DNA of 64,000 nucleotides, taken from Pocillopora damicornis (taxonomy: Eukaryota). The stretch covers positions 620,001-684,000 of the forward strand of contig NW_020843834.1 in NCBI RefSeq assembly GCF_003704095.1. Reading direction: 5' to 3'. Positions 4,860 to 44,900 of the stretch are shown piece after piece (position 1 is the stretch's first letter; each line of letters opens with the position of its first letter). The notes beneath the pieces are model-generated. The model saw only the letters and a list, made by a program, of their open reading frames with translations. It did no database searches and had not been told where the DNA came from. The position numbers were made by a program, and so were the translations under genes.

Positions 4860-5545
4860 ATAAAAGTCGAGTTCGTTCTATGAACTTCTAAACGCCGATA
4901 CCGTCAGTGTTTGCTGATTAAAATATGTAGACCGCATCGTATAACTCTCACTTTTCACGAATAAGTGTGGCATCGAGAATCACTGTATGACTGTAAATTT
5001 TCTGCTAATGAAAATGATATAAAGTTTATTGGGGTGAAACTAAAAAACTGTGATTTGTGAAATTACGTCATAAAAAACAAGATGCCCTCAGGCACCTGCC
5101 AGCGAAAGGCTGAAAAAGCTATCGTAATAATTTTAATTGCGCGTTACTCACGTCCGTTCTATAAATTTTTAAACATAGATACCGTGAGTGTTTGTTTATT
5201 AAAATGTATAGACCACATCGTATTGCTTTCACTTTTCACGAATAAGTGTGGCAGCGAGAATCACTGTATGATTGCAAATTTTCTGCTAATTAAAATGATA
5301 TAAAGTTTATTGGGGTTTGTCGGCTTACGTCGTAGAAAAACGAGAAGCCCCTTGTCACCTGCCAGCTAAAACAATCGTAATAAATTCAATTGCACGTGCC
5401 TGTTCGCCCCTCCTCTATATCTGGGTATATTAGCTACGTCCGTTCTATGAACTTAAGTGTCATAAACACTATAAGTGTTTGTTTATTAAAATATGTAGAC
5501 CACATCGTATTGCTTTCACTTTTCACGAAAAAGTGTGGCAGCGCT
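4860..5545. repeat. Imperfect tandem repeat, about 2.5-3 copies of a ~283-bp unit
   Basis: GTTCTATRAA recurs at ~4875/5156/5442 and CTTTTCACGAAWAAGTGTGGCA at ~4951/5232/5519. ATTGCACGTGCCTGTTCGCC occurs at ~4616 and ~5389. Confidence 0.75.
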
Positions 5546-38401: not shown

Positions 38402-38952
38402 GATGCTGCCCTTATGCCTTTTGAAACCAATGGTGTCTGTAGTGTCTTATGTGAGCCTTTTTTGTTGGTGACTGCCTTTATGCCGGTACAGAGAGTGCCA
38501 CTGTCTTGCTTTGACGCAAGGTATCCCGAGATACTACCAGTTGTCGCCTTTGAAACCAATACTGACCAATGTAGGATCTACTTGACTTGTTATTTTCAAG
38601 GAACTGTGACTGCCCTTATGCCAAGACTGTGTTAAAACAGTGAGTTTTCTTGCTGTTATGGACTGCAATGCTGGTTGCTGAAAACATCCTGTTCGGAGGC
38701 CGTCAGTGCATCTTGCGCTCTGAAGAGATGATTGCGCTTATGCCAAAGCACTTGACAATGAACCACAAAGCTGGTTCTACGTATGAAGAAACAGCCCTTA
38801 TGCCAATTGGTCAACGACGCTCAAGAACTTTAGACTGTGGCCAACTTGTGCGAAACGTGGTCCTTAACTTGCCAACTAAAGGGAATTGAAAAGTTCAGTT
38901 TAGTAACGCTGTTATTAGATTAGATAATGGGGTGACTGCCTTTTATGCCAAA
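38402..38952 (+). repeat. Dispersed motif array in the ALAS 3' UTR, consensus (GTGA)CTGCCYTTATGCC(AA)
   Basis: Six clear copies start at 38407, 38473, 38611, 38733, 38793 and 38937; degenerate copies at ~38535 and ~38858. Spacers are largely unrelated. Confidence 0.8.
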
Positions 38953-39007
38953 GCCGTTTCGGCTACGTAGAGAGTGGACAATTAATTTAATGACACTGCT
39001 GTGACCC

Positions 39008-39457
39008 TACAGCTACGAAATGGAACTCTTTAAGTATAGATAAATCGATTCGCGGGGAGTAAGTTATGTAAAATTGGAAGAGTTTTTCAGGACAACGAGC
39101 GAACGATGTTGGTTTTCGGATTTCCATTTAGTATCTGTAATGACCCTTTTCATTCTTGAAGCGGTTCATAGAGCGCAGAAGTCGAAGGAGGTAAATCTGA
39201 AAAGACAATTCTAGCGGACTGGCGATTTCAAAAGAAAGATATCGGGACATGACAGTGGGACGCCTTGCCTGTGTTCCCTGATTCCTTTCTTTACGTATTT
39301 TTTACTTTGTAAACTTTATTAATAGCACAGCTACGAAATGGAACCTCCGGGTGTAGTTAAATCGATTCGCAGGGAGAAAGTAGAGTAAAAAAGGGGGAAG
39401 TTTTTCAGGAATAACGTGCGAACGATGAAGGTTTACGGTTTCCACTTAGTACCTGTG
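39008..39457. repeat. Two ~132-bp direct repeats, each folding into a long hairpin
   Basis: Copies at 39008-39139 and 39326-39457. Outer arm ACAGCTACGAAATGGAA pairs with TTCCAYTTAGTAYCTGT; inner arm ATCGATTCGC pairs with GCGAACGAT. Confidence 0.75.
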
Positions 39458-39983
39458 TTGCCTCTTGCCAATTTACAATTAGCTTAAGAAGATTTACACG
39501 TCTAGGGAGCTACATTCGGAGTAGCAATTTAGCGGATTTGTCGTTAGTGAGAAAAAAGAAACCGGATATGTCCTTGGTTAAAAATCGGTGTTGGGTTTTT
39601 GTAGATAGTGGTAAGTTTTAGTCTTCTTTTGAGTGAAACTCGAGATTCAAACTTACCAATTAAAATGTATTACTTTCATAACCAAAAGTGTTCTTGATGC
39701 ATTACAATCTAGTTCCGAACAACGTCGCTCTTTTGATAACTTACTCGTCATGACTAAAAAGCTCCACAAGTCCTTTACCATCTCTCTTCCCAGCTATAGG
39801 TTGCACTCCCGCTCGACACATTTGTGGCCTCAGGAAGAAGCATGTGGCTACTGATAAAGGGCAATTTTTAAAGCATCGAAAGGAACTAGGGGTTTTATAG
39901 TGACGCTAGAAGGTAGTGTTGCCCAAGATTTGTATTCGCATGCAAACGGTAAACCTGCCACACCCCACATATCCTACACACCC

Positions 39984-40396
39984 GCCGCCTGTTAAGCTCA
40001 TTTTCTGTGTAGGGCGCCAGACCACCTTTCGGGAGGTCGAGGGTTGACACTCAGGGTCTTAAAGTAACTGAGAAGAATATGCTGCCTTAGCTATGACATC
40101 TGCAGATGGTTGAACATTCTTGTCTCCTCAGATAAGGACGAAAAACCGGAGGCCCTGTCCCGTGCATTTCCTCTGCGCTGTACAGCAGGGGACTTTGAAC
40201 AACCCACGCACTTCTCGGTGATGTGGTCTGACCTTGTTTCCAAAAATCACAAATTGAGGGTACCTGCAAAATTCCCTTTCAAAAAGTTGTAAACTGCTCA
40301 ATGCAGTCCGACTAAAGTCCCCTGAAAAGTACTGTAAAGCGCATTAGAGCATATCCATATGGAGAATGTGCTAAATAAATTCATCATTATCATTAT
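39984..40396 (+). mobile_element. Degenerate SINE (tRNA-like head, LINE-type tail)
   Basis: Head resembles A/B boxes (TAAGCTCA..., GGTCGAGGGTT); tail TGTAAAGCGCATTAGAG...AAATAAATTCATCATTATCATTAT. Confidence 0.5.
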
Positions 40397-40813
40397 ACGT
40401 ACTATGTTCCACAAGAAAAAAGATTACTCAAGAAAATAGTGACTAATTGACATTCAACCAATGATTAAATGGTAACAAATGATGAAAATAACAATAGTAA
40501 TAATACTAATACTAATAACAATAGTAATGGTGCTGATAATTTAAAGGGGCTTGCCCAAGAACCTCATTGTTCCTCTATACTCAGCTAGGCTACATTAATG
40601 ACTACATTTTGCCTTTTAATTATAAATTATCTTCTTATTTCATTGAAATTCTATTCTGTTTCATACAATAAGAAATTCCATGCTAAAGGATATTCTCCCA
40701 TTCCATCATTCTATCATTTCATCGAATAGCGTCACCCTATTAAACTTCGCTTCGCGAATTCATCGGCTCTTTAGAGCATTATTCACTGATTGAAATGGTA
40801 AAACGCTCTCTCT

Positions 40814-41650
40814 CAAAATTGGCCACAAGTGTCCAAAATCGAAAATCGGCCATAAGGGTCCAAAATCCATCATCGGTCACTAAGGTCCCAAATTGAAGAT
40901 CGGCCACTAGTGTGTAAAATTCAATATCGGCCATTATGGTCCATAATGAAAAGTTGGCCACTAGGGTCCAAAATGAAAAATCAGCCATAAGCGTCAAAAA
41001 ACTAATATCGGCCACCAGTGTCCTAAATCAAAAATCGGCTTCTAGGGTCCAAAATGTAAAATTGGTCACTAGTGTCAAAAATCTTATATCGGCCACTCGT
41101 GTCCAAATTCCAAAATAGGCCACCAGGGTCCAAAATGCAAATTCGGCCACAAGTGTCCAGAATCCAAAATCGACCACAAGTTTCTAAAATCGAGGATCGG
41201 CCACTGGTGTCTAAAATCTCTCACTGGACACTCGGGTCCAAAATTTAAATCGGTCAATAATGTCCAAAATCTGTAATCGGCCACTAGGGTCTAAAATGCA
41301 AAACCGGCCACTTGAGTCCAAAATCGAAAATCGGCCACTAATGTCCAAAATCACAAATCGGCCACTGAGGTCCAAAATTCAAATTCGGCCACTGTTGACC
41401 AAAATCTTAAATCGGCCACAAGAGTCCAAAATCCAAATTCGACCATTAGTTTCCAAGATTCAAAATCGGCGACTGGTGTCCAAAATGCAAAATCGGCCAC
41501 TTATGTCCAAAATGCAAAAATCGGCCGCCAATGTCCAAAATGCAAAATCGGCCATTAGTATCCAAAATCTTATATCGGCGACTAGTGTCCAAAATGCAAT
41601 AGGGTCCAAAATGAAAAATTGGCCACTATGATCCGAAATCCAAATTTCTT
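40814..41650. repeat. 27-bp minisatellite, about 31 copies
   Basis: Unit ~GGCCACTAGTGTCCAAAATCNAAAATC. The 9-aa periodic ORFs (SKIQNRPLV) are by-products of the repeat. Confidence 0.92.
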
Positions 41651-41904
41651 CCGTTCTCCAACGTTGTCTACTCCGACAAAATTTTAACTTCTAAGTAGAA
41701 AATATCAGTATAACGTAAATCAGCTGTCTTCTGCTGAAGTACAATCATATCCTTGTATTGAATACAATGATTTGTGAGTGCGTATTCGACCGTGAACTGC
41801 ATAAATTAACAAAAATTCTCGGCAGAAACATTGCCATCCATGCCAACGGCGCTCGATATGCGGTGAACAAGTTTGCTAAACTTGAACAATTCTCCGTCTA
41901 AATA

Positions 41905-44900
41905 ATGACTGAAACGTCGCCACATGAAGTTGCTAACAGCAAAGAAAGTTTCCGAAACATAGCCTGCTTCTTTGTGTTTGGAATACTGTCGTTAATCTAC
42001 GATGAGACTTCTCTCGCGGCGGCCGAAGATGTGTTGTCGGGCAGTAAGATTCCCACTACAGTTGTTATAATTGCCATCGCCGTACCGGTTCTCGGTGTAA
42101 AAATCACCGCGCCGTGGTTTCTCCAGAAGTGTCCATACTTGGTCAAGGCCTGCCTGGTTGTGTTGCTTCTTTTTGCGGGATTAATCGTGGTTGTAACGGC
42201 TTACGATGTTCACTTGAGGTTGTTCGGAATTAGCGTCATCGAATCGGGAGTCAGTTTGAGCGAAATAACTTTCTTGGCCATGACTGCCTGCTATGGCGAG
42301 ATGACAGTCAGTGCATTTGTAGCGGGAATCGGTGTGGCCTCGTTATTGGGACCATTTTATTACACAGGTTTGACCCTACTAGTATAATCTTAGTTTTATT
42401 GACGCGGAATTTTGAAAAGTAACACATACTTAATCATTATCGTAAAATATATAGTGGTTATTCACTATTTTAAGTAACACTTCGTGGTCGCTTCGGATGT
42501 GGTCGCAGCGTTTCGACTGCTTCTGCCAGTCTTCTTCAGGGGAATGTCTTCAAACCGAGCGGCGGGAGACGATTAAGATGTTAAAGATCAGAAGAGGCGT
42601 AGATTTATATCGCTTGTTCGCTAAGGAGTATTTTTTTAAATGATTGTGAATATATGGAAGTCATATATTTGAACTGCGGTTAAAGACGTGAATATGAAAG
42701 CGATCTTCGCAGTAATGAACACTACGTAAGTATTAGTGAGAAGAAGAGCTTGTTAGCTCAGTTAGTAGAGCACTGAACCGGTATCGCAGAGGTCATGGGT
42801 TCAAATCCCGTACAGGCCTGAACTTTTTTCAGGCCTCCTTTTGATCACTACTACCTAAGTAGTGTTCATTACTGCGAAGATCGCTTTCATATTCACGTCT
42901 TTAGCCGCAGTTCAAATATATAACTTCCATATATTCACAATCATTTATTCACCATTTCACGCGTTTATTTAGAACCAACACATTGACCAGCTCCCAGTTG
43001 GCTTGTTAGCTCAGTTGGTAGAGCACTGCACCGTGACCGGTATCACAGAGGTCATGGGTTCAAATCCCGTACAGGCCTTGAAAAAAGTGAAGAACTGACA
43101 TCCTGACTGAATATTATTAGACGTTTTGATGTGTAGTATCACTGAGTAATTTTATGAGTTGTGCCGTATTTTGACGAGCCCCTAGGGCGCGAGTCGAATT
43201 ACAAACAACGAATAAATTAGAGAAAGATGTATTTTTTTTAATGCAAATTCATACCTGGCACGAGAAGAAATTTCTAGCGATGACAGAGGCGGACCACTTC
43301 TATTGATCATTGAAGATCAAGAAACTTTGAGATTTTCATTTAAAAAGATAAGTTTGTGCCCCAAAGTGATCATAAAATCAAACTTTTTTAAGCAGATTCT
43401 TATACTCTACTTTTTATGTAGAAATTCATTTATTATGATTCAATTCATATAATCCGTTTGAGTAAGATTTACAAACCTAGCCGGGCCTAATCGGGCCCAG
43501 TCGTTCAAAGGGGAGATAACGCTGTCCAGCGGATAGCCTTCGAAAGACCAGGGCCCTGATCTGTTACGGAGTATGAACTTCAGAGACATTTGCTATAGAA
43601 CAGGACATCACATCTTCAAAATATTAGCAGTTATGCGATTTTAGACGACGATATTCTGCCTCGCAAAATGCGTCAGTAAAAAAATGCTTCTGTGTTAAGA
43701 GGGTAACTGTGAGAGGTGGTTGTCGTATGAGAACGCGGTAATAGGAACTGCATATTGAGCTGAAATTCAGCAAACAGTGTGATTTAAATCTTTTGACCCA
43801 ATCTACGGCACATAGGCACGTGTGCCTCCACTGATGAAGTGGAAGAAAAGCGGGGACCTGGGACAGGAGGGGGGGGGAGGCGAGGTTAGTGCAAATTTTT
43901 AGGTTACAAGGTACAGCAAAGTACAATCAATGTAATCCTCAATTACTTTCTTGGCTGTTACATCGAAATTTCTTCATGTTTAATAGGTATCATTGTAACT
44001 TTGCAGTTCTTTACTGAAATGATTATGACCTATATCTTACAGGTCTATCCACATGGCTGTGTCTCGCACCGAAAAGAACACTTTCAACAACATTTCCTTG
44101 GCCATTTCTTGTCTTAGTTACGTACTTCATCTTGGAAAAGAAAGACATTGATTCAAACGCGAAAGGACACGGAGGCGGCGGGTACGAAAAACTTCCCTTG
44201 AGCGAGAACACTTCTTCGGATGAACAAAATGCTACTCCTGAACACGGCTTGACTTGGGAAGAGAAATTTTCCGTTACCAAGCAGATTTTGCCTTATATCA
44301 CTTTCTTGTTTCTCACGTATTTTGCAGAGTATCTCTCTAACCATTCCGTTATAACAACCCTAGCTTTTTCAAACTCCTCGTTCAGTCCGCGGGATCATTA
44401 CCAGTACTACATTGTGTGCTATCAAGTTGGAAAGTTCCTAGGAAGGTCCCATATCTTCCTGCTCTCTTGCACCTGCTCAAAAGTGGTCCCTTATGTGCGA
44501 GTTAAGAAAACATGGATTTTCGCTTTGGTAGAGATAGCACATCTCATGTTCTTTACGTTTGCTTCGTGGTTTCGTTTCGTGCCGCATGTTTCTATCGTAC
44601 TAATTCTCTGTGTAACAGAAGGATTTGTGGCCGGATCAATGTACGTCAATTCGGCCCACACAGTGTCTGAGGTCGTCTCAGATCCGAAACAGAGAGAATT
44701 TGCATTAGGACTACTAACCATTGGAAACGGGATAGGAAAGCTAACAGCTGGGCTCGTAGGACTTCATTTGGAACCGGAGCTGAAGAGTCATTGTGTTTAT
44801 GACTTGAAGTTACAAGATCAGTGCATTACTCGATATTCAACAGAATCTGGCTGGGAGACAAACATGCGCTGCAGTCATTCTCAAACAAACTCAACAAAAT

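Follow-up and report, generated by a model that had tools for sequence, protein, structure and literature searches.

The window analysed here is a stretch of 64,000 nt of the Pocillopora damicornis genome (contig NW_020843834.1, positions 620,001–684,000; all positions below without a contig name are those of the window) and carries the gene for 5-aminolevulinate synthase (ALAS), the rate-limiting enzyme of heme synthesis. The 3' untranslated region (3' UTR) of this gene holds an array of six copies of a short motif, 335–880 nt past the stop codon, that we interpret as most probably the target sites of a coral microRNA. The initial annotation of the window, made from the sequence without database searches, had named the gene as ALAS, and this assignment was borne out by Pfam, which placed Preseq_ALAS on exon 1 and Aminotran_1_2 (PF00155) on later exons; relatives are likewise named 5-aminolevulinate synthase by the Joint Genome Institute (JGI). 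The presequence encoded by exon 1 contains two Cys-Pro heme-regulatory motifs, KKCPFL and ERCPVM. The parts of the gene on which the analysis relies are the following.

31817–31975, plus strand: first ALAS coding exon (Pfam PF09029 Preseq_ALAS, E 2.4e-10)
37769–38071, plus strand: last ALAS coding exon (translation, PF00155 and RNA contig joints), with the stop codon at 38069–38071 as given by the translation
38072–39724, plus strand: ALAS 3' UTR of about 1.65 kb (polyA RNA contigs)

The extent of the transcript was obtained by placing the polyA RNA-seq contigs of four studies on positions 36200–42000. The GT..AG introns 36486/37131 and 37495/37769 were found in contigs of all four independent studies. 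Contig X1 runs without gaps from 37769 to 39724, X4, which is joined by splicing to the upstream exons, ends at 39525, and X13 and X9 end at 39557 and 39637, respectively; an ATTAAA hexamer is present at 39660–39665. With spliced polyA contigs reaching 39525–39724, and not ending before 38400, the array belongs to the ALAS mRNA, as had been supposed. No known element was found by Rfam over positions 38000–39800.

Allowing up to one mismatch, TGCCYTTATGCC was detected on the plus strand at 38407, 38473, 38611, 38733 and 38793, while the sixth copy (38937–38949, TGCCTTTTATGCC) differs from it by one extra T. The initial description of the array was accurate in its coordinates (six copies, from 38407 to 38937), in the start-to-start spacings of 66, 138, 122, 60 and 144 nt, and in the short flanks, GTGAC preceding three copies (2, 3 and 6) and AA following four (3–6). 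At the same stringency seven matches occur in the window against 0.37 expected, a number reached in none of 100 shuffles. Across the 234-Mb assembly the exact 12-mer is found 25 times on both strands, against 16 for the reversed control, with 3 of the 25 lying in the array; a genome-wide search for paired CYTTATGCC words 30–160 nt apart retrieved the ALAS 3' UTR only. The genome scan for motif clusters that had been proposed thus leaves the array as the only cluster in the genome, and the scarcity of genomic 12-mers, the lack of a second cluster and the lack of any tandem repeat at the array in Tandem Repeats Finder all argue against a dispersed transposon or satellite.

Less can be said for the origin proposed at first, namely an old tandem array of which only the core has been preserved. 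An alignment of eight units, comprising the six copies and two regions regarded as degenerate copies, showed similarity in the core only, in agreement with the earlier remark that the spacers are mostly unrelated, and gave no spacer homology in favour of tandem descent. Only traces of a common unit sequence speak for it, TTTGAAACCAAT and AGAGAGTG being found twice each. Both degenerate copies, reported near 38535 and 38858, are weak, and only the former has the TTTGAAACCAAT tail in common with copy 1; it is listed here as follows.

38530–38560, plus strand: site-1 unit, probably a decayed copy that has lost the core and kept the TTTGAAACCAAT tail (direct repeat, unit alignment)

A coding repeat was considered and rejected. 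Copies 1–3 share one reading frame and copies 4–6 another, which corrects the earlier statement that the copies fall in different frames while leaving its conclusion, that the repeat is not coding, in place. The array follows a conserved ALAS stop codon, and a 1-nt insertion polymorphism at 38457, carried by other strains and seen in three RNA data sets out of four, interrupts the short open reading frame (ORF) of the copies, so that the array is not coding. As a side observation, two short ORFs, at 38414–38635 (73 aa) and 38650–38889 (79 aa), read copies 2–5 in the same relative frame as xA[LF]MP (TAFMP, TALMP, IALMP and TALMP).

To identify a small RNA corresponding to the motif, every other occurrence of the core in the genome was extracted and folded. 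This led to a hairpin at C1382:1064567–1064589 with a folding energy of -48.8 kcal/mol, whose 5' arm GUGUGGCAUAAGGGCAGCCACCCC is complementary to the motif and which is the only such locus in the genome. The mature guide encoded there, UGGCAUAAGGGCAGCCACCCCUU, is identical at 23 of 23 positions to spi-miR-temp-29, tabulated as uggcauaagggcagccaccccuu and sequenced from Stylophora pistillata, a coral of another genus, with 115 mature and 3 star reads in the small-RNA data (Liew 2014 and its supplement, PMC3962355). The small RNA UUGGCAUAAGGGCAGUCAC suggested as a candidate by the initial annotation agrees with the genomic microRNA, UGGCAUAAGGGCAGCCAC..., at 17 of 18 overlapping positions. Compared with the Stylophora precursor, copied from the supplement of the same paper, that of C1382 is unchanged in the 5' arm and loop, with a few base differences in the star arm, the pattern usual for a conserved microRNA. 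The hairpin recurs in three JGI metagenome contigs of other corals; its 5' arm is invariant there, one-sided changes leave the stem intact, and the flanking sequence is either 80–88% identical or cannot be aligned. It is conserved in four sources beyond the present genome. Rfam has no family for it. The microRNA may be expressed in this coral too, judging by the Stylophora reads. An origin of the microRNA by inverted duplication of a target finds no support, the only blastn match of the hairpin flanks to the ALAS UTR or to a second group of candidate targets (the CP family, see below) being about 19 nt long.

Each of the six copies was then examined for pairing with the guide, positions being counted on guide nucleotides; for comparison, the perfect duplex has an energy of -49.3 kcal/mol.

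Site 1, 38397–38419, plus strand: nt 2–15 unbroken, U opposite nt 1; 16 Watson-Crick pairs, ungapped; -29.7 kcal/mol
Site 2, 38463–38485, plus strand: nt 1–14 (G:U at nt 1 and 9), mismatch at nt 15, nt 16–19; 16 Watson-Crick and 3 G:U pairs; -31.2 kcal/mol
Site 3, 38601–38623, plus strand: nt 1–14, mismatch at nt 15, nt 16–18; 18 Watson-Crick and 1 G:U pairs; -32.8 kcal/mol
Site 4, 38723–38745, plus strand: nt 1–9 and 11–14, G:G mismatch at nt 10 (the cleavage position); -23.1 kcal/mol
Site 5, 38783–38805, plus strand: nt 1–12 and nt 14 only; -24.0 kcal/mol
Site 6, 38927–38950, plus strand: nt 1–8, an extra target U, nt 9–14 and 16–21; -35.1 kcal/mol, the best in the UTR

The seed (nt 2–8) is perfect in all six sites, and nt 10–11 are paired in sites 1, 2, 3, 5 and 6. 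Outside the six sites the next best place in the ALAS UTR reaches -19.5 kcal/mol. With 150 shuffled guides a mean of 0.07 sites per UTR was found at -23 kcal/mol or better, with a maximum of one, and the best energy was -25.9 kcal/mol. The genome-wide search with the 17-mer target also recovered site 3, which differs from it by one mismatch. In the predicted duplexes the core lies opposite guide nt 2–13, GTGAC opposite nt 14–18 with a common C:A mismatch at nt 15, and the first A after the core opposite the 5' U of the guide (nt 1), so that pairing accounts for the core as well as for the GTGAC flank and the trailing A.

Conservation was assessed by using the last ALAS exon as query and extracting the contigs that encode relatives of it, the taxa among these contigs being defined by sequence divergence. 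At the related coral ALAS locus L001 (last exon 89% identical in aa, coding exons 76–81% in nt) three sites of -35.2, -37.4 and -35.5 kcal/mol and one decayed copy are found downstream of the ALAS stop. They have 18–19 pairs and are more complementary than the ALAS sites of the present genome, the GGGGUG/GGGUG flanks pairing with the 3' end of the guide. No blastn alignment was obtained between the L001 ALAS UTR and the present one; the orthologous UTR keeps the motif and not the spacers. L002, which is 93–95% identical to L001, keeps two sites and lacks about 978 nt holding the third. Since this indel removes sites, their number is evolutionarily labile. The indel itself, L001:4386–5363 relative to L002, takes out one strong and one decayed site.

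Further candidate targets were sought genome-wide with the 12-mer core, with 17-, 19- and 21-mer targets allowing mismatches and with the bulged form; the 17-mer target with up to two mismatches gave 35 genomic matches, compared with 3 for the control. At C1457:160440–160458, minus strand, a sequence perfectly complementary to guide nt 1–17 (-35.4 kcal/mol) was found; the stop codon of a half-transporter lies 185 nt upstream of it. Compared with solved structures, the membrane-domain exon of this gene scores 65 bits for ABCB10 and 41 for ABCB9, and its relatives are named ABCB10 by JGI. The site is also present in three other taxa, namely L050 (last exon 95% identical in aa), L051/L052 (90%, from the same sample as L001) and L053 (87%), and is the only significant blastn alignment in each pairwise comparison of the downstream regions; a relative at 77% is without the site. 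On both sides of it the four taxa share short conserved flanks, with GCTGTGGCAC on the upstream and GCCAC on the downstream side (L036, minus strand, about 5430–5480; L050; L051; L053), and these could form a local stem presenting the site.

The loci of FECH (ferrochelatase), ALAD, UROD and CPOX were scanned deliberately. At the FECH locus (C1284, L060) a bulged site of -38.6 kcal/mol, with the same architecture as site 6 of the ALAS array, is found at C1284:108047–108067. The stop of the recognisable last exon (...CPMCVNPTCGLAKEFFLNRTL*) is about 850 nt upstream of it, and an AATAAA follows after 75 nt. Another coral FECH contig, L067 (last exon 92% identical in aa), has a site of -42.1 kcal/mol 619 nt after the stop, just before an AATAAA, and the site is the only alignable island between the FECH downstream regions of the two taxa. 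Between the FECH stop and the microRNA site, about six head-to-tail copies of the 19-nt TATCCAGCGGATAAATCGC were also observed at L060:5935–6050. In 10 kb at each of the ALAD, UROD, CPOX and heme oxygenase loci, no seed-bearing site better than -23 kcal/mol was found; a -28 kcal/mol match at heme oxygenase was set aside, being upstream of the gene and without seed. A Pfam search did not detect UROS. In HMBS, the last coding exon has a near-site at C1390:61035–61051, minus strand (L068), of -32.8 kcal/mol with a mismatch at nt 7, which encodes ..DGSCPHA..; we regard it as an uncertain target.

A different kind of site was found in a family of tandem genes on C3172 and C2425, here termed the CP family, which carry sense-strand, in-frame coding sites with 2–3 mismatches over 21 nt and -41 kcal/mol. 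They lie at C3172:229440–229460 and 229686–229706 and in at least five further gene copies (L048, L049), with two sites per copy. In the ORFs of this family 5 of 7 and 6 of 7 cysteines are in Cys-Pro, and a perfect microRNA target read in frame is GGCPYA. No Pfam domain was found in the family, a search of the protein atlas returned nothing, and a word search retrieved close relatives only. In heme-binding proteins, Cys-Pro constitutes the heme-regulatory motif (PMC4628764).

As for the remaining genomic matches, the one at C1420:145470–145486 (L059), a 17-mer with one mismatch, is antisense to YGVRAAMPG of a DNA-polymerase-kappa-like coding exon, so that the mRNA resembles the microRNA and not its target, and was rejected as a chance match. 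Those at C338, C3447, C2698, C3883, C333 and C3591 (-23 to -29 kcal/mol) have no recognisable gene context. The distal part of the ALAS UTR contains a further repeat, unrelated to the motif.

39009–39140 and 39327–39456, plus strand: two-copy repeat of about 130 nt, 80% identity

These are its sole copies in the genome; each starts with ACAGCTACGAAATGGAAC, and the first has inverted arms at 39008–39028 and 39119–39139.

Taken together, these observations make it very probable that the array consists of six target sites for the coral microRNA UGGCAUAAGGGCAGCCACCCCUU, through which Argonaute-guided repression would act on mRNAs of mitochondrial heme synthesis. The multivalent RNA cis-element that had been postulated in the ALAS 3' UTR is supported, its units being predicted microRNA target sites. 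In the proposed mechanism, the guide loaded in Argonaute would pair with the ALAS 3' UTR in the interval given above. Sites 1, 2, 3 and 5 could be sliced, in the plant-like mode of cnidarians, because their pairing is unbroken over nt 2–12 or further and includes the scissile nt 10–11; site 4, with its mismatch at nt 10, and site 6, with a bulge after nt 8, would more likely serve for binding only. The expected outcome is less ALAS mRNA and a lower flux into heme synthesis. Since conserved single sites are found downstream of the FECH and ABCB10 stops, the same guide probably co-regulates the mitochondrial ends of the pathway, that is ALAS, FECH as the last enzyme and ABCB10 as its partner in the inner membrane. 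ABCB10 forms complexes with mitoferrin-1 and ferrochelatase and has a proposed role in ALA (5-aminolevulinic acid) handling (PMC4628764); given the ABCB10–ferrochelatase complex, the three mRNAs would represent the points where the pathway enters and leaves the mitochondrion.

Several points weigh against this interpretation. The ALAS sites do not attain near-full complementarity, sites 1–5 having 16–18 Watson-Crick pairs out of 23, with nt 15 and nt 19–23 unpaired; 4–7 of the 23 guide positions stay unpaired in each ALAS site, so that pairing is less extensive than is typical of cnidarian cleavage targets. Work in Nematostella showed no repression from seed-only sites or from sites with seed plus 3'-supplementary pairing, and a weaker effect with mismatches at nt 10/11, and three seed sites were inactive in Nematostella or Hydractinia (PMC11811051). 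By their predicted pairing, the ALAS sites go beyond the seed plus 3'-supplementary type, being continuous to nt 12–15, and stay below typical cnidarian cleavage targets. Moreover, the expression of the microRNA is judged from the Stylophora data, with modest read numbers, and the FECH and ABCB10 sites were placed in 3' UTRs only from their position and from polyA signals. Finally, no sites occur at the ALAS loci of five more distant groups of coral or cnidarian contigs (last exon 61–84% identical in aa), and the link to ALAS is therefore lineage-restricted.

The main rival explanation, which we consider improbable, is that of a decoy (sponge or target mimic), in which the microRNA would be sequestered by partly mismatched sites on an abundant ALAS mRNA, buffering its action on FECH, ABCB10 and the CP genes, and ALAS would not itself be the regulated target. 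Six sites on one well-covered mRNA would suit such a role, as would the mismatch at nt 10 of site 4 and the near-central bulge of site 6, which recall plant target mimics, and the fact that every ALAS site is less complementary than those of FECH, ABCB10 and the CP family. However, four sites pair across nt 10–11 and should be cleavable, the coding mRNA of a rate-limiting enzyme would be an odd decoy, and the more complementary sites of L001 give no hint of selection for non-cleavable mimicry.

A protein-binding motif and neutral decay are both poorly supported. In the former case, the copies would be recognised by an RNA-binding protein, for instance of the MBNL type proposed by the initial annotation, and the match to the microRNA would be secondary. 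Each core does contain two UGCC (YGCY) tetramers 4–5 nt apart, but the bases between them (CUUA) are conserved as well, and so are 5–9 flanking bases, which fit guide nt 14–21 and nt 1. Conservation between and beside the tetramers is what microRNA pairing predicts, and a protein site becomes unnecessary. The L001 flanks that pair with the 3' end of the guide, the conservation of single sites and not of pairs at FECH and ABCB10, and the 17-nt perfect complement, expected about 0.03 times by chance in the genome (arithmetic from genome size), make this explanation very unlikely. That the array is a neutral remnant of tandem duplication without present function, as the traces of TTTGAAACCAAT and AGAGAGTG might suggest, is hardly credible, given cores that are intact while the spacers have diverged beyond alignment, a motif that recurs in the unalignable UTR of L001 from another species and, as weak evidence, the lack of any variant within the 12-nt cores among the variants listed from the four RNA data sets.

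Returning to the microRNA targets, a broader and tentative proposal, of which we are doubtful, is that this lineage-restricted microRNA is a dedicated regulator of mitochondrial heme synthesis, acting on ALAS, FECH, ABCB10 and perhaps HMBS and the CP proteins, and that ALAS is the first natural cnidarian target with many sites of intermediate complementarity. The Microprocessor (DGCR8) needs heme. A loop is for this reason possible, in which heme would raise the output of the microRNA and ALAS would in turn be lowered.

Few functions have been assigned to cnidarian microRNAs; conserved targets are known in very few cases, and most of these are developmental genes carrying one coding site. The set formed by ALAS, FECH and ABCB10 is compact, conserved and testable and has a clear metabolic meaning. 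Because free porphyrins are phototoxic, the balance of heme and porphyrins is important to an animal that is exposed to light and hosts symbionts, and the link to heme extends to iron economy and bleaching physiology. The six-site UTR also provides a natural test of the recent claim that multiple partial sites fail in cnidarians, and whether the number of sites compensates for imperfect 3' pairing is the most interesting question that it raises.

In the literature searched, no previous report of ALAS, FECH and ABCB10 as targets, or of a six-site array, was found for a cnidarian; the microRNA itself is published. The initial view that the array is not a described element thus holds for the link to ALAS and not for the small RNA. 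Together, the targets point to an undescribed control of heme synthesis by a small RNA. For spi-miR-temp-29, Liew 2014 (PMC3962355) gives only Gene Ontology term enrichments of bulk seed-type predictions, and 'Aminolev' is absent from its text and eight supplements. Neither ALAS, heme nor spi-miR-temp-29 was found in recent coral non-coding-RNA papers or in the main text of Praher 2021 (PMC7935066), and nothing relevant came from searching full texts for ALAS or ABCB10 together with coral or microRNA terms, where bulk prediction tables in supplements could still list a target.

The sites described here can be compared with three known systems. In vertebrates, heme synthesis is controlled through an iron-responsive element in the 5' UTR of ALAS2 and through heme-dependent decay of the ALAS1 mRNA. 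As proposed for the array, this control targets the rate-limiting enzyme through its mRNA, in coordination with genes for iron and heme handling, but the element, the trans-acting factor and the position are all different. Like the plant-like targets of cnidarian microRNAs (Moran 2014; Praher 2021, PMC7935066; Admoni 2025, PMC11811051), the sites are predicted to pair beyond the seed and across nt 10–11, and show a conservation between species that their surroundings lack. In contrast, the conserved targets of that kind are single, almost all coding, and change by 1–2 nt across species, whereas here six intermediate sites share one 3' UTR. Clustered 3' UTR sites for one microRNA, with imperfect 3' pairing, are known from lin-4/lin-14, let-7/lin-41 and bantam/hid, where they act by seed pairing and GW182-mediated repression. 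The ALAS array resembles these bilaterian targets in the clustering of sites in one 3' UTR and in the imperfect 3' pairing, and differs from their seed/GW182 mode in that its sites are predicted to pair through nt 12–15. If the broader proposal made above is correct, intermediate targeting through many sites may represent a bridge between the plant-like and the bilaterian modes.
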